DNA from: Lepidodermella squamata
Lineage: Eukaryota; Animalia; Gastrotricha
Assembly: GCA_047495785.1 (NCBI GenBank)
Contig: JBLDXI010000024.1
Coordinates: 3,534,001 to 3,598,000, forward strand
Direction: 5' to 3'
Length of the DNA stretch: 64,000 nt
Shown here: positions 1,899 through 63,991 of the stretch, piece by piece
How positions within the stretch are numbered: position 1 is the stretch's first letter
Layout: the number at the start of each line of letters is the position of its first letter
Program-made: the position numbers and the translations under genes
The notes under the pieces: generated by a model
The model's database searches: none
What the model was told of the DNA's origin: nothing
Seen by the model: the letters and a program-made list of their open reading frames with translations, nothing else

Positions 1899-1985
1899 CA
1901 CTGTTAACTGAGGTTTTGTGCCATTCTCTTTAGGTTTGCACTTAAATAGCCATTGAATAAGTAGCTGATCAGCTGACAATACAAG

Positions 1986-13094: not shown

Positions 13095-14096
<1,002 letters not shown>

Positions 14097-22439: not shown

Positions 22440-24084
22440 ATGGATATTATTACGAGCGAAAGTTTTCTCTACTACGTTGGTGTTCCCGTTGCAGCGCTCG
22501 GAACACTGTCACTTGGGTTGTACTGGGCGGCATATCGATATGTCCACAAGTATAGAAATATGTTTCGAGACGCAGGTATGCCGTATGTACAACCAACGGG
22601 TTGGACTGGGTCTTGGGAGTTGTATTTGGACGCGGAGGACTTTTTCGAGGTCGAACAGACGCTGGTCGATAAGTACGGAACATTGTTCGGCATTTTTGAG
22701 GGTCGCCAGCCGATAATTATGGTATTTAGACCGTAGTTATTATGCACTTGAAACTTATTGACTAATTCTACTCCATTAGGTTTCGGAGCCTGATCTGATT
22801 CGTCAAGTCTTGCTAAAAGATGGCGATTCCTATGTAGATCGGCGCGTGATTGCCAAAGTGCGAAGCCGAACATTCGACCTCGTTCTATCTTCCTTGACCG
22901 GAAAAAGATGGAAGCATGTCCGCCAGATGATCACACCGGCATTCACTCCAAATGCGTTGCGTCGCATGACCCCATTGATCAAGCAAACGACTGAACAGCT
23001 CTATTTGAATATCGCTAAGAAATGCGACAGCAAGGAGCCGTTCGATATGAAGCTTTTCTGCGGCTGTTTCACTATGGATGTTATTGCATCAGTGGCTTTT
23101 GGCATGGAACTGGATTCGTTAAATAACCCTGATAGTCCGTTTGTAAAATACGCTCGCCAAGCCTTCGCTCTAGAGATCAACAAGGGAGCTATGCGAAAAA
23201 TCGTAACTACTATTTTCATGTTCCCGTGTCTTCTGCCTATTGTCGCAAAGCTGACTCCTAACAGTTCCGATATGATGAAGCCTTTTATTTTCTTCCAAAA
23301 CGTTGTTGAGGAGGAAATGAAGCGAAGGCGGCAGAGCAACAACAAGGTCGAACGGCCTGATTTTCTGCAGATGGTGATGGCATTGGAGAAGGACCCGAAA
23401 GACCCCGCGAACAAAGAATTCCTTGAATACGACGAGTACAACCTGCCATGGCTACGTAATGGCTTGACTCATGACGAAATCGTAGCACAAGCGGTTCTGT
23501 TTTTCGTTGCGGGATACGAGAGTACAGCCAACATGCTTTCGTTGGTTCTCTTCGCTCTTGCCTCAAATCCCGAATGTCAAGAGAAGTTATTCCAGGAGAT
23601 CAGCGAAGCTTGCCCTGCTGATGTAAAGGACTTGACCATGGACATGGTATACGAGTTGAAGTATCTCGAAATGTGCATCAACGAAACACTACGCCTGTTC
23701 TGCCCGGTAACGAGGCTTGAAAGATCCTGCACTCAGGACACTCAACTTGGAGGTTATCATATTGCCAAAGATACAGTTGTCGTAATACCAGTGAATACGC
23801 TACATCACGATTCTAATCTGTGGCATGAACCGGATAGATTTGACCCGGAGAGATTCCGAGATCCTGAAAGTATTGCGCCGTTCAGCTTCATGCCATTCGG
23901 CCTTGGAAACCGTAATTGCATCGGAATGCGGCTTGCGCAGTTGGAGCTGAAAATGGCTCTGGCTACTCTTGTTCGAAAGTTACGCTTCTCAGTGTCTGAA
24001 ACAATGGAATTACCAATAAGATGGCGCCCGAATGCCTTGCGAATGAATGCTTCTCCGATAATGCTGAGAGCGGAACGGCGTTGA
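22440..24084 (+). CDS. Cytochrome P450, CYP3 clan, copy a; intron 22722-22779
   Basis: N-terminal TM anchor, WKHVR, AGYEST (I-helix), ETLR (K-helix), PERF, heme motif FGLGNRNCIG. Confidence 0.96.
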
Positions 24085-30643: not shown

Positions 30644-33600
30644 TCACGACAAAGAAACTAGGCGACAAAGTCCATCTTGAGGGGTATAGCCATCGAATTT
30701 GATGGGTGCCGAGCCGCTAGCTGCATCCCCAGCTACATCCGTCGGGCATCGATGACATACAGCCGCATAATTCGAGTCTCGTGGCTGGAAGCAAAGCTTA
30801 ACTCGCGGGCTATCACTAAACAGAATCGGCCGAGTGGTGCACCGCTCCTGAGTTGGAGTTTGCAAATTCGCAAAACGGTTCACGCAAATTGTTTTCGTTT
30901 TCACGGTGGCACTGTTGTCGACGAGTAAGCTAAACGTGGCATTCTTGTAGCCATCTGCACACCCGCAGAAGCCGTCGATACATTTTCCACCACTGTAGGT
31001 GTAGCCTGGCGAATTCAACTCAGGGAAAGTAACGCAATCATCATCAGTGGTACAATTGTCTCCGAATTCGAGATGGCGAGGACCAGGCGTTGCTGGAGTA
31101 GGGGCGCACACCTTTACCCTAGGTCGATTTACGGCGTCAGTCGGCTGAAAACCGGCCTTGCCTAGAGGACAAATTAAGGCGGAATATGAATGCCAAGGGA
31201 TACTTACAAACACAAGTTCCAGCAGAGCCGCACCTGGGCTTCATGGATTTGGTAATATTGGTCCAGTTGCATTCTTCCAACGGACCACAGTCTTCGTTTT
31301 GCGAACAAGCTGCAAGGAATAGCATTAGCTATAAGGTTGTCACCAGTTGTAACCTCAAATCTTACCTTGACCTAGCACTGAAGACGTCGGTCGAGTTGGA
31401 GGCGCTGGTACCGTGGCTATAGGCAGTCTGGTCGTGGTACCGGTTCTCTGCCTGACGATAGCCTGGAAACGCTCGCAGATTTCAGCCGTAGGTTCGAGCC
31501 TTCGACGAGGTATTCTACATTTTGCGTCAACAGCGTCTTCCGCACATTTCATGCAAACTGCGCTTCCAGCACAAACTGACCCAGAAGGTTTCAACGAATG
31601 GAATCGCTTCTCAGACTCAGTCAACGGTTTTATAGAACAGCGCCCGCCGATTGAGACCTCAGTTAGAATATCGATTGACCTATCCGGTACACAGAAGGAC
31701 TTTTTGGTCAAACCATCCCTGCTTGGGGTTGGGATCCTGCGATAGAAGGAAGATGATATTGCCGTGTAATTCGCTCCGCATGAGCACGTTCCATTATCGC
31801 AAACTGCCCCTCTCGGCGATGAAGCTACGCCACGTTCAAGGTAGACTCCGGAACAGTCAGTATCATTCGAGCAAGGACTACCCAACTCCCGGGGTAAGCA
31901 CTGCCCCTCGTTTTCATCGTAGATGTCCGAAACGGCGGCACATTGGCACCGCTTCGCAGTTGAATCACAGGAATCAGCTCGGTCATTTACAAGAAGGCAA
32001 TCATCATCTCGGGAGCAACGCGTTGAAGAATGACGACGAGTTGGGTCTCGAAGCTCGCAACGTTTCGAAGACCCGTCCCATCGGAAAGTTTGATCAGCGC
32101 AATCGCAGAAACCTTGGCCACTGGCGAAGACGTTGCACCTTAGCCCAGCAAGGGACGAGCATTCGCAGTCCCGTTTACACCGCGATCCGAACGAGTTACC
32201 AGGCAAAGGGGCGCATTGTCCACCCGGCACGGATGTGAAGCATTCAGCACATTGAACTGTATTATTAATACAATTCGAGTTCTTGGTTGCGTAGAATTCG
32301 GTTCCAGCCCCAGTGCATTGCTCGCCCATCGACTTTTTAACCGAGAATTGGCAAGATCCGTCTTCTGATATACCATAGCATGGCTTACAAACACAAGTTT
32401 TGTTACCACATGCCGGTTCAAAATCCGCGAAGCATTCCTCATTCAGGCCACAATCTTCATCAACCAAGCAGTTGTAGCCAACCCTGCTAGTCATTGTTTG
32501 AGCGGTGGTTGGAATTGCGATTAATGAGCCTGTACTGGTCTCGTTTGTAATTACTACTTCTCTGACCGCTGAACTGATTAACTGATCAGCAATCGAACAG
32601 TTGAGATATTGAGTTAAGTAACTGGGATCAAAATCGTCTCCTGGTTGCCACTGAGCTTGTTTAGCTGTGAGATTCGGGTTAGAAAATGACGAGTTAGCGC
32701 AAGATGGTGGGGTGTAAACACGAGCGTTGGATTTTGTAGATGGCACGAAGTTTGGATCACACTGGCAAATCGTTGAGTTGCAAACTCGTCCTGACGGCAG
32801 AACTTGGCGATTTGAGTTCTCATCGCAATCGATGTCGTAGTTGCAGCTGTCCCCGGCAACGCGAGTTATGCAACGCCCTGTCTCTTCATCAAATCGCTGG
32901 TTAGTGAGGGGGCATTCGCAAGACATTGCTCCACAGGTCATATCTCCAGCACAATTCAGGTAAGGAGGTGAGCAAGTTGCGCCGTAGCCGACGTAGCTGT
33001 AAGTATCGGCCTGACATTGGCCGTCAACTGACCGATAGCCGCGAAGACAGCGCACAGTGCCCAGGCTACACTCTGCATTAGCTGGGTAGATCTCATTTGC
33101 AGAACCGAGGCACTTCTCGCCATATTTGAGGAACTTGTCTAGAAAAGCAGTATTATTACATTGAGAATCTCGACCTATCATTTTCAACTTACTAGAACTG
33201 CATATGCCATTTTCATCTGGGGAATAACAATCCTTGCAGATACATCTGCCCATGAGGCAAGGTGGGTCAACAGGTGCATGAAGGCACATCTCATGAAGAC
33301 CGCAATCCGTATCTACCTTGCAACCTTGGTTCACTCTGGACTCAAAGATCAGCTCATTAGGAAAACTGTCAAGCAGCATTGTTTCATTAAGAGCGGTGTC
33401 GTCGACTGCAGCTGCCTCTTCAGGCTTCAGAGTGGTTTCCTCCGCAGCTGTGGTAGTTGCTTCGCCATTATCTTGCGACAAAATGCATTCTATCGAAATA
33501 AAAAAAAGCTATGGACAAAATGCAAAATCTTGCAAAATTACTTGGCTGAGCCGTTGCAACAGTGCCATTGTAAATTCCTAATTGGAAGAAACATATCTTA

Positions 33601-34629
33601 AAAATTGAAACATTACAATTTGACTTACGGCACTTCCCGCGACCAGGCTGTTTATCTTCAGGGCAATGAAAGCAAACGCTTGTGTCACTACAAACAGCTG
33701 CGAGTGGCGTGTCAGATGCGAAAATGGGTTCGACATCACACGAGGAGGTCAAGTTCTGATTAGCCCTCGTCCCATTCGCAATGCAAATCTTCTTGGAGTA
33801 TACTGACCCGTCAAGGGGGTCGATGAAAGAGGCGGATGTTTGCTGATAACCCGCGGCACAGACGCACCGTTTAGTTGTGGGAGAGCAAGCTCCGCCACGA
33901 TAGGTAAAACCTGCCCGGCGACCAGATAAACCGAACGAATTGCAATCAACATCTGCCGAGCAGACCTCCCCTAATTCGGGCTTTTCGCACTTTTGATTAG
34001 CGCTGTTCCACGTAAAACCGGGCGCGCATTTACAATGGGACAGACACTTGAGGCCGTAAGCACAGTCACATTCTCCGCTGCAAGTTAATCCATGCGATTT
34101 TCTCTGTTTCGGCAAAACACATGTTCCATTGCGTGCCTGAGAGAGCGTGACGTAACAAATGAGAGTATATTAAATTTCAGTTTCTCACGATGTAACACGA
34201 AGAACAGAGCACTCGTTTGCTTCTAAGGCTGCAAAAAGCATGCTCGGGATAGACTTCGTTTTTGGCACCAGTGCAGGCGTCATCGCAAGCTGCTAAATCT
34301 GCAGCGGTTACGATAATACCGCTATCGGCAAGCAATCGAGCGTTGTTGCGAGCATCGCATGGCTTTCGAAATTCAATTGCGGAACAGTTGCCAGTTGCGT
34401 TTCGGGCGAAACAAGAAGAACAAACACATGTTTTCGTACTTGCTTCACAAATTTCATTGCCACCACACGCAGCATCGCTTTCACAACCTGGGAAAAGTAA
34501 GTAATGACTTCGAAGTCCGCCAAATAGTTGCTAAATACCTTTGGATTTCGATGACTCATCAACTGCTTCATCCTCAGCGGTTACTACAGCTGCTAAGATC
34601 AACAGGAAAAGCCCAACGCTAGGCTTCAT
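30644..34629 (-). CDS. Secreted multi-exon Cys-rich protein with EB-module/EGF-like repeats
   Basis: Signal peptide MKPSVGLFLLILAAVVTA from ATG 34629; repeated C..D.DCG..E.C and G..C..D.DC...C....C.C..G(Y/F) modules across ORFs 33468-34115, 31355-33481 and 30644-31213; no TM segment seen. Confidence 0.75.
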
Positions 34630-35339: not shown

Positions 35340-38300
35340 ATGATACAAACGAATATGCTTAACAAGGCTGATTTTCTGAGACTTATGTTAGCCTCAATTT
35401 TTGTTCTCACGGCAGTGATTTTCCGAAGAGGCGATGCGTTTTGCAACACAGTTCCGAATCCGCCGTTATTCGCTTTGCCCACACATTACGACACACAATC
35501 GAAAACAAAGATAAACTACTACTGTCCCGCGCATTTTGTGTCGTCTTACAACAATTTGTACACGCGTTGGGCGGGTTATGTGGAGTGCATGGCGAACGGG
35601 ACGAATGATTACTGGAAAACTGATCAAGTGGCTAATTGCGAAGGTATTCACGTGCGGACCAGGATCCCAGAAATTAAATGATAAATTTTTGATTCGACAG
35701 CTGCTTCCTGCTATCCACCCTGTAAATCCGGTAAGGGAGAGTGTGTATGCGGACTTTTGAGCTGTCGATGTGAATGCTTATACCCTTACACTGGCGCCGA
35801 TTGCAGCGTCAGTAAGTTTTCAAGCTAAAATTCAAAATTCTCGTTACGTTCAAATATTTCTGCGTAGATCCGACAGTCACATTGCCAAATAACAATAGTG
35901 TCTTCTTTCTGTATTCTTTCGCTGATCCGCACTACATTGCGCAGCCTGAGAAAGATGCAAAACAGCCTTGGGTAATGGACGTGTCAGGAAATGACCGCCA
36001 TGGAAAAATAATTGATGCTGGGCCTGGGAAGCGGCCATTTATTCATCCTACTGCACTAACTGGGATGACATCAAACTCGCGTAAATACCTGTCCATGGCA
36101 TTTTCAAACGACCCCTATTCCTACAACAGCGGGGTTAGTGCTTTATTCAATTTCAATTTCAAGCGACAGCTTATGATCTTTTCTTAATATAGAATAACTG
36201 GTACGGGACGCGGTCACTTGGCTGGATTGAAGTCTCAGAGCCTGAATACAACGTTGCGGCTGCCTCGATCACAGCTTCAACGCAACATTCCTTGATGACA
36301 TTTTTCAACAAGCTGGCCGGCTGCTGGCAGCGAGGTGGCTGCCATAATGCCGATAACGATGATGTGAGTTTTGCTCTCCATCTTCAACAACTCTGACGCC
36401 AAGCTCTTTATATTGCTATTTAGTATCCCTTTCTCGCATACAAGCCAACTTCAGGCCAGGGCCCTATGTTGACATCTGATTGGTCAAGGGGTTGTCTTTA
36501 TTATACACCTTCTTCCGGGGCTTACACTAAAACCTGCACACAACACTTTGACCCAAGCTGTTGGGAGTGGAAATTCTTCGGGTATTATTGCTGCGACAAG
36601 CCACTGTGCCTTGACTGGTCCTGCGAAGATTGGGATTGGAACTTCAAATGTGGCGGACAATCCAGCAATTTCATGCTCATGCATTTTCAATTTAACAACC
36701 CTACAAGTGACTACGTAAAAGTTACCTTCGATGGCGATACAGCAACCTCACAGGCTCTACCAGGGACAACTCAGTATCAAACAACTCAGTCTTTATTTGT
36801 AGGCACTAGAATAACAACAACAGGAACAGCCCCTGCTTACGGTTATATGCCGGTAAATTTCAAATACTAAATTTTGATATTGTTTTCATGCACGCATCTT
36901 TGCCAGGGTTACTTGGCTTCGACGGCATTCTACGTGAACAAGGTGGGGATGAGCGGAAGCGATGAGGACGACTTTAAAGCCTGGGCTAATACCAACTTCG
37001 CGACGGGGAGCTCTATGCTTCCAAATGGCTACATTACCGGGAATGCTTGCAACGTGCCGCCTACGAACATCCAATATGGCGTGCCAACAGACATGCCGAT
37101 CGGATCTGCGGTTAACGACGATGTGTTTTACATATCACTGCCCTTCTTCAATACTGGCGGCTACTATCGGCTGCGGAAAGCTACATGCACCGCAACTGGG
37201 TGGACGAAACAGGGTGATTTCGACCAAAATACGCGTAAGCTCCTTCAATTTTGCATTGGCCAACCCGCGATCGAACTAATTAAGCAAGAACAAATCTCTA
37301 AGTTACTTGAAACTTCAAGCTTTCTTAAAAGCCTATATTACAATTGTCCTTTTTCAGTCTCAACTTGCATCCCATACTGTCATCACCTTGGCTGGTGTGA
37401 TTGTACTGGAAATGTTTGCACCTGTCAGTGCCCGACTGGCTATTCTGGTCCCGATTGCACTATAGCACAAGCTGATTTGCCGACAGGCGCTATTGCATTC
37501 TGGCCGCTCAGTATCGATAGCATGGAGCACAATGGCAATGCCTGGTCAAGAAAAGCCGATGACATGACGGCTAATGCCAATCCGATAGTCCTTGGAAATA
37601 TTGGTATGGTTTTAGGCTGTAGTATCGAATTTCTAAATTTGTGAACAAATTCACAGCTGTGGTTGATGGACCTTTTGGTGCACCGTATACAGCAATCTAC
37701 TTGAAGTAAGATACGGACTATCATTTAGTAAATTTGATAAATTTTGCTCTCCAGCGAACGCCGAGCTGGAGCTTACGGGAAAGTCACGCCACCCCCTTCG
37801 ATTTCGGGGACAACTTCTTTCTCAATTCTATTCTACTTCAAATTCACCCATGCGCTATACAGCCCGCCTCGCACTGTTCCCCTATTCCTCTTTTCATCGC
37901 CATCAAGTTCGCCACTCACCGCTCCTTCATGGTTTATCGACGAAGCGACCGGCCAGATCCGCTACAACCCAGGCAACGTTTTACTGAACAACGTCGGTAC
38001 TAATACGTTCATTTATAACGTTAAAACTGCTTGGATTCCGGGTAAAATTGTTTACGACGCAACCAGCGGCAATATGGGGACAGCAACTTTCGATGCTGTG
38101 CCGAACCCGAACACAGCCGTCACCATTGATACAACAGGATCAACGGATTTTTACGTCGGGTACCGAGATGACATCAACAGAGTTTCGGATCTTGCAGTGT
38201 CCTGTGTTGGGATATACACCGGGGCGTACACAGCTACTTTGGCTGAACAACATGGCCAAAGGTGTCAATTGTTTTCAAAATTGACGTGCAGTTCAGCACC

Positions 38301-41300
38301 TGGACCATTAACTAACGCGGTTCAATCTGCCCTTGAGACTAACTCGACAAAAACAGTCTCATATTGGTGTTTCAGCGGTTACAGGTACGTTGTCAGTCTT
38401 ATGAGGGCCCGAGAAAGATACTGATTGTTGTTTTCTCAGATGGAGTTCAAATTCCCAGCAAGCCCAATCAATAAAATGCACTCAAACGACGGGGACAATG
38501 CTACCGACTATGTCTTGGGTTCCGGCGACTCCGCCAGGATCATGCGCAGCTTCAACGACTGTTTGTACTCCGAGTTGTGCGAACTCAGGTAAATTTGCCG
38601 GTTTTTAATCCTCATCAACGGGAATACCTTTCTAACTGTCACTAAAAGGTACTTGCGTTGCTGGTACTCCGACAGCTTCTTGTAAGTGTGCCACTGGTTA
38701 CGCTGGGATCGATTGCTCTATTCGTGAGTTTATGGTTGTTTTTTTTATATTCTCGGATTATTTTCAAATATTTTAGCTCTCAACATCTTCCCGACAAATT
38801 GTAATCTCGTTGCCTTATGGACAATGATGTCGACGCATGTATCGAGCACAGGAAAAATATCTGATATTTTCAATCGGACCTACGATATGACTGTGGACCG
38901 AAACACGGTATTCTTCCCAGATAATGGTCCATTCTCTGCTCCAACTGGCCTCGGTTTCGGTCTTGCCCAACAAACGTCAACGTCAATCGTCGGCGCTCTC
39001 CAGGTCGGAGAAATTTTGTTTTAGCTATCTCGCTTACTTAATTGCTATTCAATTCTTTAGGTGACTTTTCCAGTAGTACCGTTTCAGCTAAACGCGCCTT
39101 GGACGATTTCAGCCTATGTCCGTTTTAATCCTACTGCGGACTGGGCCGTCGAGTATCCCTTCGTTACTTTCCTAAATGATGGCATCGCTGGGAATTCACC
39201 TTCCATCGCTATGGACCCGAAAGGAAATGCTAAATTTAAGTACACCGCGCTTGGATCTAGTACGAGTGTCCCGATCAGCACGCCACCTAACAACTGGATC
39301 GGTGTTGGATTTCAATGGAGATGGGTTTCGTTCCGTTATGACCCAGCTACGTTAAGAGTAACATACGTTATGGACACAACTTTTGGAACTAACATAACTC
39401 TTGCGAATGCGCCTGTGTTTAAATCTATTAAAATGTACGTCGGATCTTCGGATGTGGCTCTCGCCCCGATTTGGGATGGCTCCATCTCCTGCCTCTCAAT
39501 TTACAACTGGGCACTAAGTGACGCAGAGACTACTCAGTTGAGGCTAGCCTGCAAACAGATTTTAGGCGGAGGAGCTGCTCCCGCTGCTTCACCGACGACC
39601 TGCAGAGCGTGCCAAGGCGCCTCCTTACCTTATGGCTATTTAGCTATGCCTGACTCAAATGACTACATGTATGCGGCTGGGTCGGTTGTAACTTTCGATT
39701 CCGTTGCTTTCACTTGGTTTGATGTTGCGGCACCTCCTCTTCGTACAGTTAGTGTCACCTGCTCGGCTACAACTGGATTGTGGGATACAACACCCATCAC
39801 TGCTAATACTTATGGTAGGCCCGCTGAAAATATTATATTTTTGGGAATATATAACAATAATTTGATTGTACAGCATTTGGATGTTATCCTGAGTGTCACA
39901 ACGAGTAAGTGTTAATTGATTCATATATGCATTTATTTTAACTAATTTTGAAAATTAAATTAGCGGTCTTTGTACCTGCACAACCACATCCTGCTCTTGC
40001 ACTTGTATGACTGGATTTTCTGGTATCGACTGCTCGATTCAAAGCGACATGGCCACTCACATCACGAAGGCCAGCGTTTTCTATCCTCTAACCCTGGACC
40101 AAACTATAGCTCAAGGCTCGAATCCTACTAACACACAGCCCTACGCGGTCGATGTTTCGCCGAATAAGTTTCATCTGCAAGTCGGGAAAATAGTTGCTCT
40201 TCAAACTGGACCATGGAATACGCCGGATAGCTCTTATAGATTCAGAAATGGTTTCGACTACTGGTTGAATGGCAATGGAAATCTGTTTGGTACTGTTACT
40301 GGTTCATCAGTCATGTCTGGCAGCCAACCAGTTACCCTTCTTTTCTACATGCGCTTTAACGCTAAAACTGGAGATCAGCCAATTCTCGCCTTTCAAACGC
40401 CCAATGCATCTCCGCAGTGCACCTCATTTGTTGTCGATGAAGTGAACGACAACTTGCTGTATTATCCAACGAATGTTTCCGTTCCTAAGAGTGGCGCTTC
40501 GTCGATATTGACCACTACAGCTTGGATTCCTATGAAAGTTACCTACACAGCTGGGCAGAAGGTCGGTATTTCTACATTTGACAACACGTACTCGACTTAC
40601 ACGGCTTCAACTGTTACCGTGCGGACTTCAAGCACTCTCTTGATTGGCTACGATAATTTCCTAAAATTGGCGACCGATTTGACGCTCTCATGCCTCGCCG
40701 TTTTCCCTAACACAGTTACAAGTTCAACTCTCGAAACTAACCACGGTATGTTCATGGTTCATATTAGAGCTTAATAGAGAAATCCGTAATTATTTGCAGA
40801 AAAAGCTTGTCAAGTGTTTGCAAAGCAGTTCTGTCCGCTTCCGCCATCCAACATTGCAAATACCATGTCGCCAACTTACAAGAACGTTTTCGTTGACACC
40901 GAAGCCTGGTATTTCTGCTTTTCTGGCTTTTCGATAAACGGAGGCACTCCGAGGTCAACCTCGATAACATGCAAGCACCCGCATACATCGTTCTACACTC
41001 CTGCTGCTCCTACCTGGAACCCATCGACACCCAGTCCTTGCACGGCTACGACAGCTAGCTGTATTCAGCCGTGTCTCAACGGTGGGACATGTTTCAGTGG
41101 ATTGCCGACTGCAATTTGCGAGTGTCCTTCTCCCTACTCCGGTCCTGATTGCAGCATAGGTATGTTAAGTCGAGCATTCCATAAAAATTTCTGATTTTTC
41201 CGCTTCTAGATCTTCGGATATTCCCGGACCGGTGCCATTTGGTCTCTGCGTTTCCATTGACCAGCTTTTTCATTAACAACTGGGGAAAGGCTATTGATTT

Positions 41301-44300
41301 GATGTCTTCATCAAGAACTGCGATAATTCCAACGGGGGCGAATATTGAATGGCACACTTCAATTCCATTTCCGGCCTATCCACCCCCACTAGCGGTAGCT
41401 AACTTGGCTTACTCAACTGCTGGTCAAGTAAAGGTCGTGTACGGTACAACTGCTCCAGCTTTTGAAGCATCGTCTTCATTCACCATTTCCGCCTACATCC
41501 GCTTCGATCAAGTGAAAACTGTTTACAAAACTTTATACCCACTCGTATCATTCACTAACCTATGGGGTAGCAACTCTCCCGCTATTTTCATCTCCCCGGA
41601 TGGGAAGGCGGTTCTTCTCTATAAATACGGGTCTAATACATACACCCTAAACATCCCGTTCACTCGATTGATCGGCATTGGACCTTGGGCGTTTGTTTCA
41701 TTCAATTACGATTCGGCGAATAATCGAATTACTACTTCGATGAATAACGCGTTGTTCTCGACGCCTGTATCGGTAACTCAATATCCAATGTGGGCAACTT
41801 CCACGCTTTGGATTGGGTCTACTGATACAACTATATCAGGGGGTGCAACAGTCTTCACTGGAACAATATCTTGCTTAACAATCTACGAGAAATCTTTAAG
41901 CTCGGCAGAGTTGACCCAACTTAAACTGGTCTGCGATTCCTTCCTCGGCGGGTCGACGGCAAATAACACGGCTACAGATTGCACAACATGTTTGCTGCCG
42001 CCAACTGGGGGGTTGCCCATTGTTACGGAAAATGATGTCGACCTGCCTGTTGGAAAGACATTGACTTATGTCACCCCACCTTATTGGCGATATCCGAATA
42101 TCAACTTCAATCAACGCACTCTGTCTACAACATGCCAGGCTTCGGGCACTGCTCCCGTATGGAGTACCCCTCTAATTCCTGTTATCGACAGCCCTCCTTG
42201 TAAGACCTGCACTACTTTATTTTCGAGTTTAAATATTTGACTTTTTTATAAGCTTACACGGTTTATTGCGACCCACCGTGCGTTAATGGCTGGTGCGAAT
42301 GCTTATCTGGTTCGTCATGCAAATGTAACTGTCTCGCTGGCTACACTGGACCTGATTGCTTGGTACTGGCTACGACTATTACCAGCGTTGCATCATCATT
42401 TTGGCCAATGACTCTTGACTCTGGAATGGCGAGACATCCAACGCTAGCACGCCTTGTTGCCTTGGACTTTGGTACAAACAACAACCCTCTGAATCTGTAC
42501 CTTGGAATTGGTTTGGACAACGGGCCGTTTAGCAACACCCCAAACAGCGCTGTTCGAGTGAGATCACTCAGGACGCTTCCTAGAATTATCGGAGCGGCGT
42601 CGAGTACAACTTTCCCAGCAACATGGACGATCACGTTTTTCCTAAAATATAACCCAAAAGCGTTTGATCACCAGCCAATTATAACTTTCGGCTCAACTGC
42701 TGCTTTCTCGCAATTTTGGCTGAATGTTCAAAGCGGGCAACTTGTTTACCAACCTGGTAATAAAGTGATTCCTTTGAATGGGCCTTCTCCGATATCGAGC
42801 CCTGGAACTTGGTTCCTGATGATAATAACGTACTCAGGGGGTTTGATGGCTTCGTCTTCAAACGGGGCAAACCCTAATGTTGCAAGTAGCGGAATCGCGG
42901 TTACTGGACTTAATGGTGCGTCGATTATGTACGTTGGCCTTAGCAACTACCCGACCAGCTGGTTTTACTCGGACCTGTCGGTCACTTGCATGGCTCTCTA
43001 CCCAGCTGTATATTCATCTGCTCTAGCGAATCAGCACGGTCAACTTTGCCATCTATTCACGAAAATGCAGTGCTCGACAACGGCTCCGCGACCACCTGGT
43101 ACTAAGTTTGTGGCGACGGATACCAATGCGATAGCCAGTCAAGGTGTCACCTACACATGTATCGGGGGTTACTTATGGGCTGCTCCCGTCAATGCCAAAA
43201 CTCGAAGTGTCTCGTGCATACAGAGCTTGTCTCTAAACCCTACGGTTTCCTGGTCTCCAACGTCTCTAACAGGGTCATGCGTTGGTAGGTTATTTGCATC
43301 CTTAGGCTATATATAACTGAATGATAATTTATCAAGCTTCTACATCAACCTGCTCTCCAGCTTGTGCAAGCGGAGCTACCTGTGTTGCTGCTACAGACTT
43401 CGCACGTTGCAAATGCCCGACGGGTGTAACAGGGCTCGATTGTTCGATAAGTGAGTTTCGAATCTTTTTTACTGGAGATAGTTTGGATTCCAAAATACCT
43501 ATGTTACAGATACCTTGAAACTTCCGGCCTTATGCAGAATCGTCTCTCTGTGGCCGCTCAATATCCAAAACTTGAACAACCTCGGGAAGGCTGTAGACGT
43601 CATACAAGGGCAAGATGCAGATGTCGCTACTACCCTTTTGTGGCCTGATAACGGACCATACCCACAAAGCGGCAAGGCTGTTCCTAATTTAGTGGGATCC
43701 TCAGTCGGAGCGATCCTAGTCAACGCCCAGGCTCCATTGCTACAACTTGAATCGTGGACCATCTCTGCGTTTCTCCAGTTCGATTTCACAGCTGTTGGCA
43801 ACTCAAATTTCGACAAATTTTACGCATTTTTCTCGTTTGCAAATAACACGAACATCGTCAATTCACCCGCCATTTTCATGTCTCCGGCTGGGCAAATTCG
43901 GATGTACTACGTTGCAGAAGGTGCTTCACGCTTCTATGATTTGAATGGCCCGAGCTATATAGGCGTTGGCCAGTGGGCTTTCGTGTCCATCACATATAAC
44001 AGCGTTACGCAAAGACTTTATCTGGCTATGCGGCTGCGGGGCGGTTATACTGGTTTGACGACTAGCAACATGTTGCAGCCGCCTCCAGTTTTCTCAGCAA
44101 CCAATACGAACTTCTACATCGGGTCAACAGATATGGGACCTCAACCTGGGACCTATACCACAGTTTTCCCTGGTCGCATAGCTTGCATGTCAATCTATAA
44201 AACAGCATTAGCGGCAGCTGAGATCAGCCAACTTTTCGCAGCATGCAGTGAGATTTTGGGTTCGACCGTCCCTGCGCCGCTAACTTCCCAAACTACTTGC

Positions 44301-47300
44301 GACGTTTGTGTAAACCTCACAACAGCCTATCTAGCTTTGCCATCTCCTAATGACGCTAACATCCCGGTCACCGCGGCTAACATTCGTCATACCTGCCCTG
44401 TCAATACCCGACTAGTTTCAGACAAATTCGCCCGTACTCAAGACACGCAATGTATAGCGACAAATACCTGGTTCCCGGATCCTTTGTCGGATTGCGACGA
44501 TCAAGCTACACCGGTTCAATGCAATCCGACCTGCATGAATGGAGGCCAATGCATTTGCGACAGTTCTATCAACCAATGCTATTGCCAGTGTCAGCCGGAC
44601 TTCACAGGGCCTGAATGTATGATCAGTATCTCAAACTATCCGGTTGATAGTTCTGCAATAGCTTTCTGGCCGCTAACAGCTGATACGACTGTGCGAGACC
44701 CTGCGACCAAATGGACATCTGTCATTGCATTGGATTACTCGTTCGACAAACAACATTTGAGCGTGGGAGATGGGGCTGGGCTCACGTCTGGTGTATTCAC
44801 AAGTTCCGAGCAGAGTAACAATGCCTACAAATTCAGATCTTTAAGAAGCGATTCTTACCTTTGGCTCGAGAATGGAGATCTTAACTTGGGCGGTCGGTCT
44901 TGGGACGGCTCTGCCTGGGTTAATTGGAACAGCCCACCGAGCCCAATTTTGCCATTTGTTATTATGTTCTATGTCAACTACAACACGCAAGCCGGTGGCA
45001 ATCAGCCAGTGTTCAGTTTCGGAGAAGGTGGAACAGCACTGTGGATTGATCAAATAACAGGCCAGTTTCGCTATTACCCGGACAATGTTCTACTCCCTCA
45101 CACCGGGGCGAAGTTCAGCGTGAATATTTCAACTGTATGGATGCCGGTAACTATTGTTTACGATGACACTGGTAAGATGGGTGCAGCGGTGGGAGCAACC
45201 GTGGGGGCGCCTTCATCGATGGCGTCTGTTTCCATCTACGCCAATGGAACGAATAAATTCTACCTTGGCTACTCAGATTTCCCAACTCCCACGTTTTCGG
45301 ACCTTGGCATCGCCTGCTTCGCTATTTATCAAAATGTCACCTATTCGACAAATCTGGCTTATAAGCATGGCAAGGCATGTGCTCAATTCGAAAAAGCGGC
45401 TTGCGCTAATCCTGCATCGGATTCCAAAGCTATCAAACCTTCGACAACAGCTTTGGCTGGGCAGAGCTATACTTACACTTGCCGAGGATCTGGTTTGGCA
45501 TTCCAGCCTTCGATTAGTTACCAGGAAACTATAAGCTGCTCGGTTTTCTCGAGTAGTATGGTTCCGACTTTAAGCTGGACTACTAAGTCTAACAACTGCA
45601 ATAGTAAGTGATAAAACCCTTCCAAAATTTAGCGTCTGATATGGTATTCTTTCTATTAGCTTATACCGCAGCTTGTTCACCACCGTGTCAAAACGGCGGT
45701 ACTTGTAACAAAACTGGAGCTTTCCCTGTTTGCCAATGCACCTCTGGATATCTCGGGGTGGATTGCTCTATTCGTAAGCTTTTCCCTGTGTTTTCTTCAT
45801 CTTATAGCGGTAATTCGCTTATATTTCAGCTGCGGAGATATTCACCTGCCAGAGCTATTTGCAGGGCTATTGGCCGATGCTTGCGACCCAAGCTACTAAC
45901 AACGGCTATTTGATTGACCTGTTCAACTCTTCCCAGAGCATCGTGACTAGTACTAGCGGCCTTAATGCACGCTATGACTCGCCATTTTACCCAAATGGCT
46001 CGGCTATCATTGCTCTGACCGGAAATGTATTCGGTGCTGCTTATGTGGACAAACCTAAATGGCCTCAAGCCGGCAGTTTGAACCAGTCATTCGTAATTGC
46101 TGGATATGTTCGATTCGACCCCAGAGCCACAGCGACGACTTTGTACCCATTAATATCATTCAACGATGGAACGGGGACCGGCAATTCACCGACAATCTTC
46201 GTGGCTAAAACTGGGCGCGTCGTGATGCAATACATAGCGAATAATGTGATGACTTCCGTCGAGTTCTGGGCACCTAGTGTAATTGGCGTTGGTACCCCCA
46301 AGTCCTTCCTAATTATCCAGTTTAATAAAACGAGCGGAAATATCACTGCTGGGACGTTGCATTTCCAGACCATGGAATACTTAGTTGGCACGCCTGTCTC
46401 CGTTTGGCCGATTGCTGACACAGTGTCTGTGAATGGGAGGATGTACATTGGAACAGTAGTTATGAACCCAGTGCCCACTGGCTATGCGCAACTATTCAGT
46501 GGCGAAATCGCTTGCCTTTCCATCCACAACCACACTCTGCCAGAACAACAGACGCAACAGCTTTTGCTGGCCTGTGACTACTTACTGGGTGGTCCTAGGC
46601 TACCGACTGCTCTGCAGATATGTTTCGTCCTGCCACAGTGTGAGTACTTGCCATATGTGACAAGGGCAACGAGGGTGAGCGAGTACTACGCTCCGAAGGT
46701 AATTGGTGAGGTGGTTGCCGAGGGGAGCTATACTAACTCAACTCAATTAACCTTCCTGTGTGACTATGGTACTGCTTACAACAACTCGCCTATCATCGAG
46801 CAATTGGTATATTGTAGCTGGGGCAAGTGGATCAAGCCCTACAACGAGTGCTCACGTAATATTTCGTCATAGGTATATTTTAATATGAAATAAAAAATTT
46901 TGATTGCAGCGTATTCGTGGCAAAACATGATAACCGACATAAAGTTTTTTGATTCCTTTTCGGATATCGCCTTCTTCTACTACGTTAACAATGCGAGTGC
47001 GGTAATTTCTCAGGCAGGAATTGCGATCCCAGCGATAGCTGACCAACAAAAGCTCAACAACTCGGTGGTAAACTAAAAAGTACTTGGATTCAATCTGATT
47101 CATTCATCTTTCTTTTTAGTTCTCCGCTGTTTCAACGATCAGCAGTCTTTATTCCAAACTCATACGAATCAATCAGAATTTAACCGTTGAAACTCTGATG
47201 GATGCAACAAGAGGTATGCTATTAGTTTAATATCGCAAGTGTTACCATATTTATAATATCTCAGCCTATTCATCTGCAATGGGAAGAATCATCTTTTCAC

Positions 47301-50300
47301 TCACAAATTACACGTTGAGAGATCTCGGATTGACATCATTAACTGCTTATGACAATCTCTGGATTTGCGAAGAAACCATTACTCTCGAGCCTATTCCCCC
47401 ACCTTTGGTCACTCAACAACAAATACAATGGCTGTATGACAGTTTCTTGAATCTGGTGAACGATATGACGCGTCTTGTCACCAACAAATTACCCGTTGGT
47501 GGAACGTTTAGACAAGACGAGTTGTTTTACTCGGTCTCCATTTCGAAAATGTTATTGCCGCAGCTCTCAGCCAAGAGAATCTACACGAATTATGCGAACG
47601 TATACTTCCCTGGCATGCGAGAGAATGGTTACTTCACTCATCTATTGGCTGACGAATTCTACCCAAATACCACCTTAAATGTCAACTCAGTCATCACTGT
47701 TGTGGTTAGTTATTAATAGGCCGTATAGTTTTGGATAATGCTCTCATTTCATCCCAGGTGTACTCGTTTCTGAACAACATTCTCAGTCCGCAACAGCCAT
47801 TTAACTACTTGACCGTGTCCGTGAATGTGTATCAGGGATCGAAAAAGCTGACGTTAAATCCTGATAAACCTATTACCATCGTCAGTCGAGCTTACCAACC
47901 AAAAGCCAAACAATTCGGTCAACAGAAAGCCTTGGCCCAATGTAATGTGAACAAAATAAAGTGCAAGGTGAACGAAAATTCAGACCGGCTCGGTACTTTG
48001 GTTGTTTTTCCTCTAATATTTGGCGCCGGGTCTTACATGCTCGTGATTCCTAACCAAGACATGGGCTACTGGGCATTCATTCACTTCAACACAAACCCGT
48101 CAACAAGTAACTACATTTGGAAGCTTACGGTGACCAAGAAAGACGATGGTACGAAATCTGCCCAACTGGTTGGAGGGGGTGATGTCGAACGGCCGAAGCT
48201 ATACTTTGACGGATCAAGTGAAACTCGCCTTCTCATTCCGTTATCTGCGATCACTACATTCTCCGGACTTTCTCCAGCAATGCCTAAGGCTTCAGTTCAA
48301 GTATTATTCCGCCGTGATTACTCTGCCTACAGCAATGTGGATGATATGCCTGAAATTGCGTGCTCTTTCATCTATGCTTACGGGTATCATTTATCCATTA
48401 AGCCAACAGCAGACAGCTTATCAAACGGGAATCTAAGATATCGGCGTCAAGCGTCATTCGATTCGTCAGTTGTTGCCGATGCGAGTACTTCAGAAGACTC
48501 GGTAATTCTCACAACCTCGCGACTTGGCGATTTTGGCATTCAAATCACGATTCCACCCAGTCGGATCGCGTTTTCCGATGTTTTTGCCCAGTTTTCAAAG
48601 CTGGAGTCCAATAATATACCAGTCATCCTCTTCATAGCCGGAGCAATCTTCTTCCTCCTGATAGGCCTTGTTATTTTCTACTACCAAGACAAGAAAGATC
48701 TGAAGCGGTGGAGTTTCTATCCAGTCCAGAGCAACCTCTACTTCCAGAATTACAACTATCTGGTAACCATCTACTACAGCCGAGTCCGTCATCCGAAGCT
48801 CAGGCCCTTCGTATCAATCAGCCTGCTCGGTGATATTCAAGACACTACCCTTCGGGAACTGAAAAATGGCAGTCGGAGGAACTTCGAATCGGGGATGGCT
48901 GAAAACTTTATCGTTAACACATTCATCCCAGTAGGAAATGTCACAGGAATCGAACTGAAACTTGACAGCGAGATGCATAGCGCTTTCTTAGCCGAACTCT
49001 ACATTGATAAAATAGTCGTTGTCAACCCAGAGAGATTGACCAAACACATCTTCACCGTCGAAGAGAAGTTAGTGGTCGGTGAACCACCGCGTAGATTCAA
49101 AGAAACAATCGTTGATTTCGACAACCTTGGCGGTTTGGTCGCACAGCACATCAAAGCAGAGATTGCCGAAGATCATACTTGGTTTTCGATAGCGAAGAGA
49201 CCTTACGCAAGTTCATGGACTCGTTGCGAAAGATTGGGCTGCCTCATTGCTGGGATGTTCTTAGTTATGATGGCGGAGACACTCTTTTTTGGGAAAGGCT
49301 ATTCCGCTCCTCGATCTGGGCTGATCTTGACCAAGTACCTTCGAGTTTCATGGTACACTTGCTGGACCGTCGCGGCTTGCACAGCAGCCGTCATTATCCC
49401 GACTAGCCTGATTGCTTTTATTTTCCGAAACACTCCTCGCAAATCTGCTGAGAAGAACCATTCACTGACAATCTTCAACATGAAAGTCCGAATGAGTCGA
49501 AAAGCTGAAGATGGTAAGAACGATACGGCGAAGAGGCTGCCATTCTATGCTGTCTATTTCGGCTGGGCGTTGGTGGTTTTGTGCGTTCTGTCTTCGATTC
49601 TTTTCGTGATTCTCTACAGCTTGCAGTGGAGTTTGGAAAAATCGCTGCATTGGGCTAGTGGCATGGCAATTCACATAGTAATCGACATTATGGTCATCCA
49701 AATAGCGAAGGTAGTCAATTCCGCCGTCATTTTCGGAAAATGTTCATGGTTTATTTTACAGATTTTCGTAGTATCAGTGGTGTACGCTTTGTCTATGAGG
49801 TACCCTGAAGATGGTATCGATATGTTTATGCCCGCGCAATTCACAAGTACGTCGTTTTTATTTAAAAACAGCTTTTACGAGTCATCATCTGCAGAGAATG
49901 ACCATCGAGCTGAAATGTTCACCAAGTTCCGAAGCTACATCTTCGCGATGATTCATCACATCGTGTACCTGGCTTCATTCGTGCTCGTTTTGTTGATGAC
50001 ATGGAACAGCGAAGCATACCTGCAGCACCGATCGGTAGAGCAAGCCATCAACGTATCCGGGATAACCCCTTTCAAAGGCGTGATCGTCGATCAAGGGCAA
50101 ATTTTTGACTGGCTCCAGTTGCAGCTGATGCCTAGACTCCTGTCGACTCACCATTGGCGGCCTGGTTACTCCTACAAGTTCGTTCCGCGAAGTGCGAAAC
50201 AATTTTACGCTTTGCCCAATCAAGAGTTGGCCTACTTATCGCCTTTGCGCTTGAGGCAACATCGTGCCATGCCAGACACTTGCGCCCTACAGCGAGCTCT

Positions 50301-52134
50301 CATACCAAGCGTAGTCAACAGATACGGAACTTTAATGAACACGCTTGAAACCATGAAATGCCGGTATCCGTTCAGAGATTGGAAAGGCGTGGTGACGTCA
50401 ACAGAGCGGCGCTTTTTTGACATGTCCTGGTTCGACCCGATTAACAACCCTCAAGATCCAAGCACAAACGTTGATAGTTCTAGCTTGACTGCGAACTACT
50501 CTTGCTGGTACTATCGGGATTCATCTGATTCAGTGTACGAAGGCTGGGTGGCCACGTACCAACCAGGAGGTTACTATACTGACCTCCTGATCGATTCAAT
50601 TAAGTATGATCCTCTGAAGGAGCTGGGCAAACTGAGAGCCGCAAGATGGCTTGACGAATTTACAGCCGTCTTTTTCGTTGATTTCACTATGCTTTTCCCT
50701 CAATCTGGCACTTTCTTACCGGTGAAAGTCGTTTTCGAAGCTACTGAGACTGGGGGATTTGTTTACCATTCTCGAATCCACCCGATCAATATGTATCAAT
50801 ACAGAAGTGATGGCTCAGCTTTAGTCATTATCATCCAGGGCGCTTGGGCTCTGTTGGTCCTAACTCAAGTCATCAAACTGATTCACAAACTCTTCATTCA
50901 GCGAACTAAATTCTTCAGAGATGGCTGGAATTGGTTTGACCTTGCTCACATTGCCGTTGCTTTTGGGGCAGTTGGCATGTGCGTGATACGTCTGTTCACT
51001 ATGAACGCGATAATTGCGCGTGTGACGGATAACATCGATGAAAATTTCATCTCCTGGGATCGCCTCGTCACAATTGACTCCATTCTGACAGACCTATTTG
51101 GGACAGCATTCTTTATGGCTATCATCCTTTTCTTCCCTGTTGCAAAGACCGTCTCCTCTTGGTCGACGGTTCTTGAAACTTTAGGCCACGCTAAATGGAT
51201 GCTGACGTACTTCGCCGTTATTTTCGCAATTCTTACCACCATGTTTGCATCAGTCGGGCTGGCAATCTTTGGCGATAAGTTTGATTCATTCAGTACGATG
51301 GCTCGGTCATATCTTACCATGGTTCGCGCGTTCCCAAGGGTTAGCTCAAAGCTACTGGGAAATGACTCGCCTCGAGATACGCGATTACCCATGTTTTATT
51401 GCATGGTCTTCGCCGCCGGAACATTCTACATTGTCTACAATTTGTTCAGACCTGTTCTTGTCCTGGCCTACTATAAAGTTTCGGCTTCGATGGGAACAGG
51501 ACCTGTTGGATTTTTCGGCAGGAAGAAGTCCAAGAAGCAGTTGCCACCTCCGCGGAGGAAAGCAAAGTGTCCAAATGCCAGATGTAAGTTGTTATAGCTG
51601 ATATATTTTATCTAATAGCTTCTTTTTCGTCTAGTTGAAAGAGCAATGAATCGCTTTGTATACTTCGCCAACAAAAAAGCTGTAGAGCTTGATGATTCAA
51701 GCCGAGACAAGAGTCTCTTGCACTGGTTTGCAGAGACAATTCGACATTGGCGAGCGTGGCGTCAAGCAGAGCGGCTTCTTGAAGTTGGTTGGGTGCCAAT
51801 TGGTGACGCTGCTAATCGAGCTCAGTCTCGTCAACGTACAAGGCTCAGCACTGCTTTGTCAACATCAGGAATCTCTTTGACATCGGAATCGCCCCCACCA
51901 TCAGCTGTTTCACGCCGGCCGTTAGATAACGACGAAAAAGAGCAGATGGATAAGTGGAAGCAGCACATTTTTGCTGAGGATGTCAGCCTACGGCCTCATT
52001 CAACGGCTATACGAGATGCGTACCTGCGAATCGAAAGCGTGCAACGCCAAAAGATCGTGAAGAGTGGTAGAGAGAAGACGACAACAGACGTTCACCATCT
52101 AAGCCCTCTTTCGGCTAGTGGTGATCATTCGTAA
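35340..52134 (+). CDS. Giant polycystin-1-like protein: signal peptide, 9 x (Sushi/CCP-EGF-LamG), Sushi, GAIN/GPS-like region, TM1, PLAT, TM2-5, TOP domain, 6-TM channel domain; about 5,000 aa (estimate)
   Basis: ORFs join in phase through short GT-AG introns, including the ectodomain-to-GAIN junction at about 46856-47758 and the last intron ending at 51634. Polycystin motifs: EDHTWFSI..RP..S.WTR.ERL.C, LYSLQW..EKS..W, PLRLRQHR...TC, Y.PGGY..DL, WLDEFT.VF.DF, FF.D.WNW.D. Confidence 0.85.
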
Positions 52135-52348: not shown

Positions 52349-54581
52349 TTAAAACAATTTCTTCCCATCGAAGCGCAGGTAGAAAACATTAATGAAACCA
52401 AAGGCAAATAATGCGAGTATTAAGGCGGCGATATCGATGATTCTGATAATTCCGATACGCTTGCGACAAAATCGCTTTCCCGTAGAGTCTGCCGTAACAA
52501 ACACGCTGCACGTTAGCCAAAGGGTGACTAGTTGGTAAATGCAACAGGTCGTAGAAAGAAAAACCATCGCCTTCACATACTGACCTAACAGACATTCAAA
52601 GGGCCTTTTCGGGAGCTCTGAGATGACCTGGCCTTGTGCGACGGCTAAAGCTAGAAGCAGTGTTACCGTAAAGACAGGTCGGTCTCCTGAAGATGGGGGC
52701 ATAAGTAGGACAGCTATGTTCAAGAACCCAATAAAAGCAGTGGGCAAAACGTAATTCTGAATGTAGTAAGCTGGGTTGCGCTGAACTTCTAGCTGAAAGC
52801 TGACTGTAGCAACGTTGTACCCTCCGTACCGCTCCTCGCCGAACAATTGCTTTTGCGAGACGATACTCCATTCCGTTCCATCAGCAGCTAAATCATCGAC
52901 TATAAACAATTTCATATCGCGTTTGAAGTCAATCAGATTCAAAGCTCGCTGCAGAGCGAAATCGAAGCTGCAGGTCTGCCTGTCGAAAGGGAAATCATTC
53001 AGATTAAGCTGGCAATCTGCTCTATATTCGCCTTCTTGCGTCCAATAGAACTTGAAAGTTCGATTCTGCCCTGTTGTTGGTACAGTAGTAATCACTATAT
53101 CATTTCCTATTAGCATGCCTTTCATATTGATGTCAGAGTCGGCTCCTGAGATGAAACGAAGATGTGGCAGCCATATTTTCGAACTATCCGCGGTACCAAT
53201 TTGCTCTTCCTTTGTGTATACAGGTAGCTGAGGGAACTGATCTATTGGGCAAGTTGTGACTTGCCAAGTTTGAAAAAGCATCCCATTTACAGAAATCTGT
53301 TCGTCAACAGTTGAAATCGACTGAAGAGCTAGCAGGCGGAACGCAATGATGATAGGGTCAAAATTAGCTGGCGGAGCTGCCTTCTCTGAGCTGAAATCGT
53401 CACAAAAGTTGAGAATGGTCGATGAGGTCTCTTTGTATGATGAAGACTGGTTTCCTAGAAAAGGCACGAAATGCTTCCCATTCATTTTGTAAGGCTCCGC
53501 CTTATAGTTGGAAACTGGAGCAGGCATTGGTCTTGAGGTGGAAATCAATGAAAAAGCTATTTCATTCAAAGTGCGTAACCTACTTCGTCTGAGGCTGCTC
53601 GGTTGCAGCTTCGGTGGAAGTAGCTGCCTCTGTCTCCGCGGTGGAATCGGTTTTGATTGGTGGTAATTTTGTAGCAGTAGCTACGGTTGCAGCATCGGTG
53701 GAAGTGGCTGTCTCTGGGGTGGAATCTGTTTTGATTGTTGGTAAGTTTGTAGAAGTAGCTACCGAACGGCTTGTAGAGGGCTTGACAGTTGACGTGGCCG
53801 CTTCAAGAGGGTCACCGCCGCATGCGTTCGGTAGTGAAGCGATTTCATCGATTGTCAAAACTGTTGACCAGTACATGACACAACTCAGCTCGTCCTTCTT
53901 GGGCTGCATGCCAGAAAAGCCATTGTCGTGGTCCCAAAAGCCGAAATCAACCGGCGAAGTTGTCCCTGCCCTAGCAATTTTCACCTTCGTGCTTGAAAAC
54001 TTGGCCAAGCCGCCGGATGTTGCTGTCTGGCCGTGGGTGACTAATTCCTGAGTTGTAGCGTTGTAAGTAATAGCCACGAACATCCATCCATCGATATCAC
54101 GGCCTTGATAAGGCGCAAGATTGATTGCAGACGTTGCGTACTTACTGACCGAGTAAAACCGCATAACTAACGACCCCATTTGGCAAATCACAGCAAAATT
54201 TTCATCCTGAGCCACGAGCTCGTGCCCGTCGATGAAATCGCAAGGCGATGCGAAGTAGAAAGCTAGAGTGAATGTCACGCTGTTAGGGACGTAGAAATAG
54301 TAAGCTAGGTAAGTTCGGCTCTGAGAGACCGTGAACGATCCTATACCAAACGGGCCTGACGTCGCGTTCAATACGCCAACACCGGCATAAGTCGGGTCGA
54401 AGCTTTTACCTTTAGAGTCATACCGATCTTTCCCGGATTTCGCGGTCAAAGGCCAAAATCCGTTCAAGCTAGACAGTTGGGGTAGCTGACTGAAACCTGG
54501 TGCCAACGTAGTAGTTGCAGCTGCTGTTACGCCTGCTTGAATAAGGCTCAGAAACGCCAAAGTTAATACTTCTAATACCAT
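52349..54581 (-). CDS. Orphan Cys-loop (pentameric) ligand-gated ion channel subunit with N-terminal LamG/pentraxin-like domain and Thr-rich stalk; exons 54581-53584 and 53531-52349
   Basis: A 52-nt GT-AG intron at 53583-53532 joins ORF 53580..54581 to ORF 52349..53569 in phase. Cys-loop CQLNLNDFPFDRQTC, IWLP, R.P.YY...LP in M1, GDR..FTVTLLLA in M2, four TM segments. Confidence 0.85.
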
Positions 54582-63920: not shown

Positions 63921-63991
63921 GCGCCGCTAGTGTAACGGTATCATACAAGATTCCCATTCTTGTGAACCGGGTTCGACTCCCGGGCGGCGCA
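63921..63991 (+). tRNA. tRNA-Gly (CCC)
   Basis: Near-identical to the other two copies; 3' trailer TCATCTTTT is identical to that of 61820-61890. Confidence 0.95.

Follow-up and report, generated by a model that had tools for sequence, protein, structure and literature searches.

A predicted polycystin-1-like gene with a nine-unit EGF-LamG-Sushi ectodomain in the gastrotrich Lepidodermella squamata

The window analyzed here is a 64,000-base stretch of genomic DNA from the gastrotrich Lepidodermella squamata, and all positions are given within it. On its + strand a chain of open frames can be followed through consensus introns, starting with the ATG at 35340 and ending with the stop codon at 52132-52134. 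We read this chain as a single intact gene, approximately 35340-52134, with approximately 30 exons and 5,000 residues, in which an array of extracellular repeat units and a channel together form a polycystin-1-type subunit, and we place the probability of this reading at roughly 0.8. That the gene exists with the architecture described below is very highly probable. The first-pass annotation had proposed a nine-unit ectodomain consisting of a first unit followed by four alternating A/B pairs, and this layout was borne out. The window is eukaryotic in character, with a G+C content of approximately 45% around the gene and introns mostly of approximately 50 bases; AT-rich introns often contain AATAAA-type hexamers by chance. 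A dynamic-programming splice model gave 4,953 codons, which serves as a rough length only; the model over-splits long exons, placing false in-frame introns in the channel exon (continuous in the metagenomic relative L007), and skips the EGF module at 38645-38725.

The C-terminal part is assigned by sequence comparison to the PKD1-like (11-helix TRPP) family. The 1295-residue channel exon matched Pfam PKD_channel (1.6e-18; 67.5 bits, cut-off 22.4), Polycystin_dom (2.1e-18; 67 bits, cut-off 23.6) and Ion_trans (2.1e-6). Its matches in the PDB were PKD2L1/PKD2 (1e-20), PKD1L3 (6e-14) and polycystin-1 (3e-8, with residues 274-579 of the exon aligned to chain 6a70_B). Word-based protein searches with the same exon found only two distant proteins. 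Hydropathy indicated approximately 11 membrane helices (1 + 5 + 5-6), collinear with those of a rotifer PKD1-like protein and of polycystin-1. The first transmembrane segment (TM1, 48622-48678 by hydropathy) and the cytoplasmic PLAT/LH2 region (48751-49110) make up the block 48622-49110. The rest of the 11-helix body (49234-51583) holds TM2 to TM6 at approximately 49234-49995, the Polycystin_dom/TOP domain at 50090-50793 and the six-helix PKD_channel part at 50800-51471. After an intron with consensus ends (51584-51634), the last exon (51635-52134) encodes a cytoplasmic tail that has no Pfam match and closes with the stop codon.

Structure modeling predicts that a PLAT/LH2 domain is present in the first cytoplasmic loop after TM1. 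The AlphaFold model of the first 464 residues of the channel exon (mb47eaf16b66e) contains the TM1 helix and a PLAT sandwich, and model residues 332-451 superpose on the PLAT domain of 5-lipoxygenase with Z 14.3 and a root mean square deviation of 1.9 A, and on the polycystin-1 PLAT domain (3117-3229) with Z 6.4. In BLASTP the region after TM1 aligns to the Pfam-annotated PLAT domain of an Adineta protein. The PLAT segment alone gave no sequence match in the PDB.

The extracellular region directly before TM1 (47758-48610) contains two features that bear on cleavage. A strand resembling the last strand of a GPS motif (48514-48546) can be aligned with rotifer PKD1-like proteins, but its triad reads Arg-Leu-Gly instead of His-Leu-Thr/Ser and the GPS cysteines are absent; two metagenomic relatives, L007 and L008, likewise have neither the triad nor the cysteines. 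Approximately 25 residues before this strand lies a polybasic, furin-type motif, RYRR in the window (48436-48447) and RRKKR and KRRRR in L007 and L008. Since the residues for GPS self-cleavage are gone, the ectodomain would stay covalently attached to the channel, except where a furin-type convertase might cut at the conserved polybasic motif. The combination of a dead GPS with a conserved polybasic motif bears on the debate over whether polycystin signaling needs cleavage. Profile searches of the region before TM1 found no match in the PDB, and an Atlas search with the neighboring linker exon at 47265-47704 (the 'pre' exon) was uninformative; for the region itself, the nearest Atlas clusters carry GPS/GAIN-B at 0.87-0.89, which we take as a lead only.

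Upstream, exon 1 (35340-35643) carries the start Met, a signal-peptide-like hydrophobic stretch at residues 10-28 by hydropathy, and a four-cysteine, Sushi-like module (35442-35642). This N-terminus has homologs in a second gene of the window (gene 2, described below) and in the metagenomic contigs L002, L003 and L005. Profile searches using the window and its relatives placed nine LamG-like domains after it, none starting more than 16 bases from the place first proposed, and an EGF module ahead of every one of them, again as had been proposed. Unit 1 (35694-37300) has its EGF at 35694-35813 and LamG-like pieces at 35882-36118, 36214-36312, 36424-36546 and 36643-36831, followed by an unassigned Cys/Trp-containing module. 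The type A units are unit 2 (37360-38527; EGF 37360-37464, intron-split LamG 37477-38280, Sushi 38290-38527), unit 4 (39965-41044; a short EGF 39965-40042, LamG 40064-40750, Sushi 40832-41044), unit 6 (42252-43265; EGF 42252-42365, LamG 42375-43064, Sushi 43083-43265) and unit 8 (44502-45608; EGF 44502-44633, LamG 44634-45401, Sushi 45396-45608), the last sharing the exon 43510-45603 with unit 7. The type B units are unit 3 (38645-39798; EGF 38645-38725, LamG 38791-39570, Sushi-like 39577-39798), unit 5 (41045-42150; EGF 41045-41158, LamG 41224-41952, Sushi-like 41962-42150), unit 7 (43333-44501; EGF from 43333, its own symmetric 114-base exon being 43337-43450, LamG 43524-44264, Sushi-like 44268-44501) and unit 9 (45659-46855; EGF 45659-45775 with a 114-base exon at 45660-45773, LamG 45856-46593, and a last Sushi-like module at approximately 46600-46855).

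The two subtypes were evident in exon-against-exon BLASTP, in which A matched only A and B only B (E 1e-15 to 1e-78), and the consensus motifs that the first reading had derived for each subtype were recovered in our unit alignments. The repeat units belong to the Laminin_G_3/concanavalin A (ConA)-like lectin-glucanase superfamily, type B by Pfam, type A by hhalign and fold, and unit 1 by iterated profile only. Pfam Laminin_G_3 (PF13385) matched type B only, with 25.5, 37.7 and 54.3 bits against a cut-off of 27.6; unit 3, at 25.5 bits, falls just below it, and the E values for units 5 and 7 were 2.9e-9 and 2.2e-14. Type A proved homologous to type B in hhalign (probability 97.9%, E 4e-13, 213 columns). 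An AlphaFold model of EGF, LamG and Sushi of unit 8 (m841ca6556cfa; predicted local distance difference test (pLDDT) 72, predicted template modeling score 0.76) shows a ConA-like/LamG jelly roll at residues 46-300. The fold matches of this type A model were carbohydrate-binding domain 4 of AbnA (Z 16.4), the N-terminal domain of thrombospondin-1 (Z 13.7), pentraxins (Z approximately 11) and the LG domain of PAPP-A (Z 10.7). Foldseek also returned clostridial neurotoxin binding domains (Z approximately 15); a toxin reading of these matches was rejected, since they reflect only the common lectin-like jelly roll, as in arabinanase, sialidase, pentraxin and thrombospondin. The LamG domain of unit 1 is divergent, an iterated profile reaching the B units at approximately 1e-35 and the A units at approximately 1e-8, and Pfam gave no match for unit 1, even with the uninterrupted copy in gene 2.

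The spacer modules were less uniform. Pfam EGF matched two of the nine EGF modules, those of unit 5 (1e-6) and unit 9 (EGF_2/EGF). Exons that encode a single EGF are 111 or 114 bases long and hence symmetric, as expected of shuffled modules. The Sushi modules described in the first reading were confirmed after the type A units, where a profile against the PDB matched factor XIII B (6e-8), CR1 (9e-8) and factor H (1e-5), identifying the module as Sushi/CCP. After the type B units the match was weak (CR1 at 0.04; 85% in hhalign to the A-type module), and for the N-terminal four-cysteine module a profile found no match in the PDB, leaving its Sushi identity unconfirmed. Pfam Sushi matched none of the exons, with the channel-exon region searched also at E up to 10.

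A phylogeny of the repeats, which had been suggested as a check, was obtained as a maximum-likelihood tree of 33 LamG units from this gene (gene 1), gene 2 and four contigs. Types A and B separated with support of 100/100, and each of the eight A/B positions formed its own clade across the two paralogs and several organisms, with support of 87-100. One clade per position means that every position of the array is older than the split of the paralogs and of the species, and that the units are ancient, fixed and non-equivalent. The branching orders of the two types, (B9,(B7,(B5,B3))) and (A8,A6,(A4,A2)), run parallel, so that a history in which A-B pairs were duplicated as units, followed by long stasis in the absence of concerted evolution, would fit the tree.

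The ligands of polycystin-1-type outer parts, and the route from there to the channel, are poorly understood. For the gene described here, we propose that the ectodomain would form a long stalk of nine non-equivalent, lectin-like modules with Sushi-EGF spacers between them, that it would bind an endogenous extracellular partner, probably one bearing glycans, and that binding or pull would be passed to a channel complex with PKD2-type subunits, as in polycystin-1/PKD2 and PKD1L3/PKD2L1. We give this putative sensory, ligand-binding role about an even chance. The outer part is made of recognizable binding modules whose fixed order has been kept between species that share approximately 30-55% identity, and the units could be expressed singly, so that ligand screens are feasible.

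A different emphasis would keep the same gene and view its ectodomain as a mechanical tether or a stalk for adhesion, periodic and multivalent, that is anchored to matrix or cuticle and gates the channel when pulled, instead of a set of specific ligand-binding heads. This is how the first-pass annotation had put it, in calling the ectodomain a long, periodic multivalent tether. The protein is indeed a long string of approximately 29 modules, the polycystin-1 family is linked to mechanosensing, and the ectodomain would not be shed by GPS cleavage. The term is not supported as stated, however, because the position-specific clades indicate that the units are not interchangeable: conservation of each position over a long divergence points to position-specific roles, and the ConA-like/LamG_3 folds match carbohydrate-binding modules best. 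We regard the tether as an unlikely account of the ectodomain, though one that differs from ours in emphasis only.

Relatives of the array provide the main support for joining it to the channel. A full HMMER search with the 709-residue exon of units B7 and A8 against 1.84 billion representative proteins found 26 proteins at E up to 0.001. The close ones were all unnamed open reading frames from ENA metagenome assemblies, and the remaining matches were generic bacterial Laminin_G_3 proteins or Notch EGF domains; no annotated protein with these units was found among the representatives. Scans of metagenome contigs from the Joint Genome Institute found nothing. All of the close relatives lie on metagenome contigs that carry no annotation, so that this part of the diversity of animal receptors is absent from the annotated databases searched. 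These relatives share approximately 30-55% protein identity with the window and have the same unit order. L002 extends from the N-terminus to unit 4 and adjoins a plexin gene, which lies upstream at 1-4270 of that contig (TIG, Plexin_cytopl, Plexin_RBD); this neighbor indicates that the relatives are animals or close kin. In L005 and L006 the collinearity extends from the N-terminus as far as unit 9, with one open frame of 1457 residues spanning units 3-6.

Between the array and the channel exon of the window lies a linker (46910-47704) of three exons, 46910-47067, 47120-47213 and the 'pre' exon 47265-47704, set off by introns that were read directly from the sequence at 46856-46909, 47068-47119, 47214-47264 and 47705-47757. 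In L001, units 2-9 are collinear with those of the window (35-53% identity) and are followed by the 'pre' exon. L007 and L008 have A8, B9, linker and channel in the same order. In L007 the 'pre' and channel regions form one open frame of 1195 residues that has 37% identity to the window over 1108 residues and matches Pfam Polycystin_dom. Because L007 and L006 overlap across 1808 bases at 99%, this one relative extends from unit 3 as far as the channel. The B9 orthologs in L001, L007 and L008 are 38-40% identical to that of the window, and tblastn of the 'pre' exon against the relatives gave E values of 1e-24, 5e-26 and 7e-21. We found no membrane segment in the ectodomain exons. Given the collinearity, read-through and conserved linker introns of the relatives, and the lack of a separate signal peptide described below, array and channel are best explained as one coding unit; the proposal that ectodomain and channel belong to one polycystin-1-like gene is thus supported by L001, L007 and L008.

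Several points weigh against this reading. Pfam PLAT gave no match on the channel exon even at E up to 10, and the alignment behind the PLAT model contained PLAT-bearing relatives, which favors that fold. Pfam GPS did not match the channel exon at E up to 10. As had been noted at the outset, PKD and REJ domains had no Pfam match on any exon, with the region before TM1 searched at E up to 10; a very divergent REJ domain is possible within the approximately 500 residues before TM1, where the fold is unresolved and the AlphaFold pLDDT stays below 50 over the 270 residues next to the membrane. Several splice junctions in units 1-3 are unsettled. The stretch was found in no run recorded as RNA, and the only possibly-RNA run, X2, was rejected as transcript evidence: it covers introns, has only strand-switch joints and behaves like low-depth DNA. 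Finally, the first intron after the array contains an in-frame stop at 46870-46872, 14 bases after the candidate donor at 46856, with an AATAAA approximately 15 bases further on.

This stop raises the alternative of two products, in which a secreted LamG-array protein ends at 46870-46872 and a separate, shorter polycystin-1-like channel gene starts from approximately 47.2 kb, or in which one gene yields both a secreted and a membrane form by alternative polyadenylation. Besides the stop, the hexamer and the lack of RNA support, the compactness of the genome, with 215 bases between convergent genes, speaks for it. Stops soon after donors are the rule in the short introns of this gene, however, and the relatives argue in the other direction. 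L007 lacks the intron 46856-46909 and reads from the B9 Sushi module straight into the first small linker exon with no stop, while in L001 that intron is conserved in both position and phase. Direct reading of L001 shows the intron 47068-47119 likewise conserved there in position and phase, and L007 has an intron at the matching place; 47214-47264 is absent in L001, and 47705-47757 is absent in both L001 and L007, in which linker and channel start form one open frame. The two small linker exons are weakly but significantly conserved as coding sequence (5 and 2 of 1000 shuffles). The channel part also lacks a separate signal peptide, and by hydropathy no clear hydrophobic stretch follows the first Met of the 'pre' frame. 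A listing of GT-AG chains across 46.8-47.3 kb was set aside as evidence, with 1,978 solutions being uninformative, and intron conservation in the relatives was used instead. Taken with this evidence, two products are very unlikely, and we prefer a single gene for array and channel, from which a secreted, array-only isoform could still arise by intronic polyadenylation at 46870-46895.

That the locus is decaying or chimeric, a pseudogene or assembly artifact that mimics a long gene, has a probability close to negligible: its great length, many exons, lack of expression data and a one-base insertion in the other haplotype at 49862, in the channel exon, are outweighed by the facts that every exon is open with no interrupted frame from ATG to stop, that coverage of the region in the source DNA run is even, that collinear orthologs occur in independent metagenome assemblies, and that the 37 listed differences between the second haplotype (from the source DNA run) and the window in the channel exon comprise 26 synonymous and 11 non-synonymous changes, 27 of them at third codon positions. 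Open exons together with mostly synonymous allelic differences indicate a working gene. The second haplotype is approximately 6% different in places (48975-49320 and 49827-49920). It also has a one-base deletion at 45780, within an intron; the insertion at 49862 lies beside a dense cluster of differences and may represent a compensated shift or an alignment effect.

The surrounding genes add a further context. A convergent gene on the - strand (52349-54581), ending 215 bases downstream of the polycystin gene, codes for a Cys-loop channel (Pfam Neur_chan_LBD 3e-11) that also has a signal peptide, a single LamG-like domain and a mucin-like stalk rich in Thr, Ser and Ala. In a single-sequence search its LamG domain matched the type B profile (E 2e-9) and not type A. 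Beyond it, gene 2 (+ strand, from 55138 to beyond 64000) is a tandem paralog that shares with gene 1 the N-terminus and collinear units 1-4, at identities of 39%, 51%, 53% and 35%. Its remainder lies beyond the window, and it probably ends in a channel, as its lineage relatives (L005, L006/L007) do. It is tempting to suggest that a lineage-specific module of the LamG_3 type was moved by exon shuffling onto two unrelated channel classes, the tandem nine-unit polycystin-1-like genes and, between them, the Cys-loop gene with its one B-like unit and mucin stalk. This idea is doubtful and we offer it tentatively; if true, it would give this animal lineage a modular toolkit of lectin heads and channels, with channels of different types reading one kind of extracellular ligand.

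The gene 2 intron between the exons of units 3 and 4 contains four tRNA genes (61360-61890) in mirror order, Gly-CCC and Arg-CCT on the + strand and Arg-TCT and Gly-CCC on the - strand, and a fifth tRNA gene, Gly-CCC, lies at 63921-63991. On the other side of gene 1, a divergent EB-module gene (30644-34115, - strand) ends approximately 1.2 kb upstream. Other genes of the window, at 13095-14096, 22810-24084 and 27039-28685 on the + strand, are a KRR1 homolog and two cytochrome P450 genes.

Three known systems invite comparison. Alpha-neurexins are built from LNS(A)-EGF-LNS(B) cassettes, in which LamG subtypes alternate with EGF modules between them. The likeness is one of layout only: both have two LamG subtypes in alternation, with EGF modules in between, and both repeat them pairwise. 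In this gene the jelly rolls are Laminin_G_3/ConA-like, and Pfam Laminin_G_1/2 matched none of the units; EGF and Sushi modules stand between all neighbors, and the anchor is a polycystin channel body, where the neurexins have a single-pass membrane anchor and a PDZ-binding tail.

Closer in sequence is the bdelloid rotifer expansion of PKD1-like proteins ('PLAT domain-containing proteins'), a large, lineage-specific family of hundreds of members with varied ectodomains. Among named proteins, I4U23_004503 of Adineta vaga comes closest to the channel body, with a collinear BLASTP alignment (962 columns, E 2e-32) that extends from the GPS strand over TM1 and the PLAT region through every helix that follows. 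REJ, NHL, PKD or WSC modules occur in the rotifer proteins, whose GPS retains an intact His-Leu-Thr; Laminin_G_3 was present in none of the 120 listed.

The polycystin-1 family as a whole (PKD1, PKD1L1-3, PKDREJ, the sea urchin REJ proteins and LOV-1 of C. elegans) shares with this gene TM1, PLAT, approximately 11 helices, the TOP/Polycystin_dom, a C-terminal PKD channel and a lectin-rich ectodomain that is large and modular. The closest named member has only approximately 20% identity. The gene described here differs in having no detected PKD repeats, REJ or C-type lectin domain, with nine EGF-LamG-Sushi units instead, and in lacking the His-Leu-Thr triad and cysteines of the GPS, upstream of which it has the polybasic motif. 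Full-text searches of the literature brought up no description of a LamG array on a polycystin, and the novelty suspected in the first-pass annotation holds insofar as no annotated relative carries these units. It is more modest than was implied, since the family is known for variable ectodomains, among them C-type lectin, SUEL lectin, WSC, PKD repeats, REJ and a single EGF (PMC1934368). Even in a receptor family noted for exchanging its outer domains, an ectodomain built as a LamG array is unusual.

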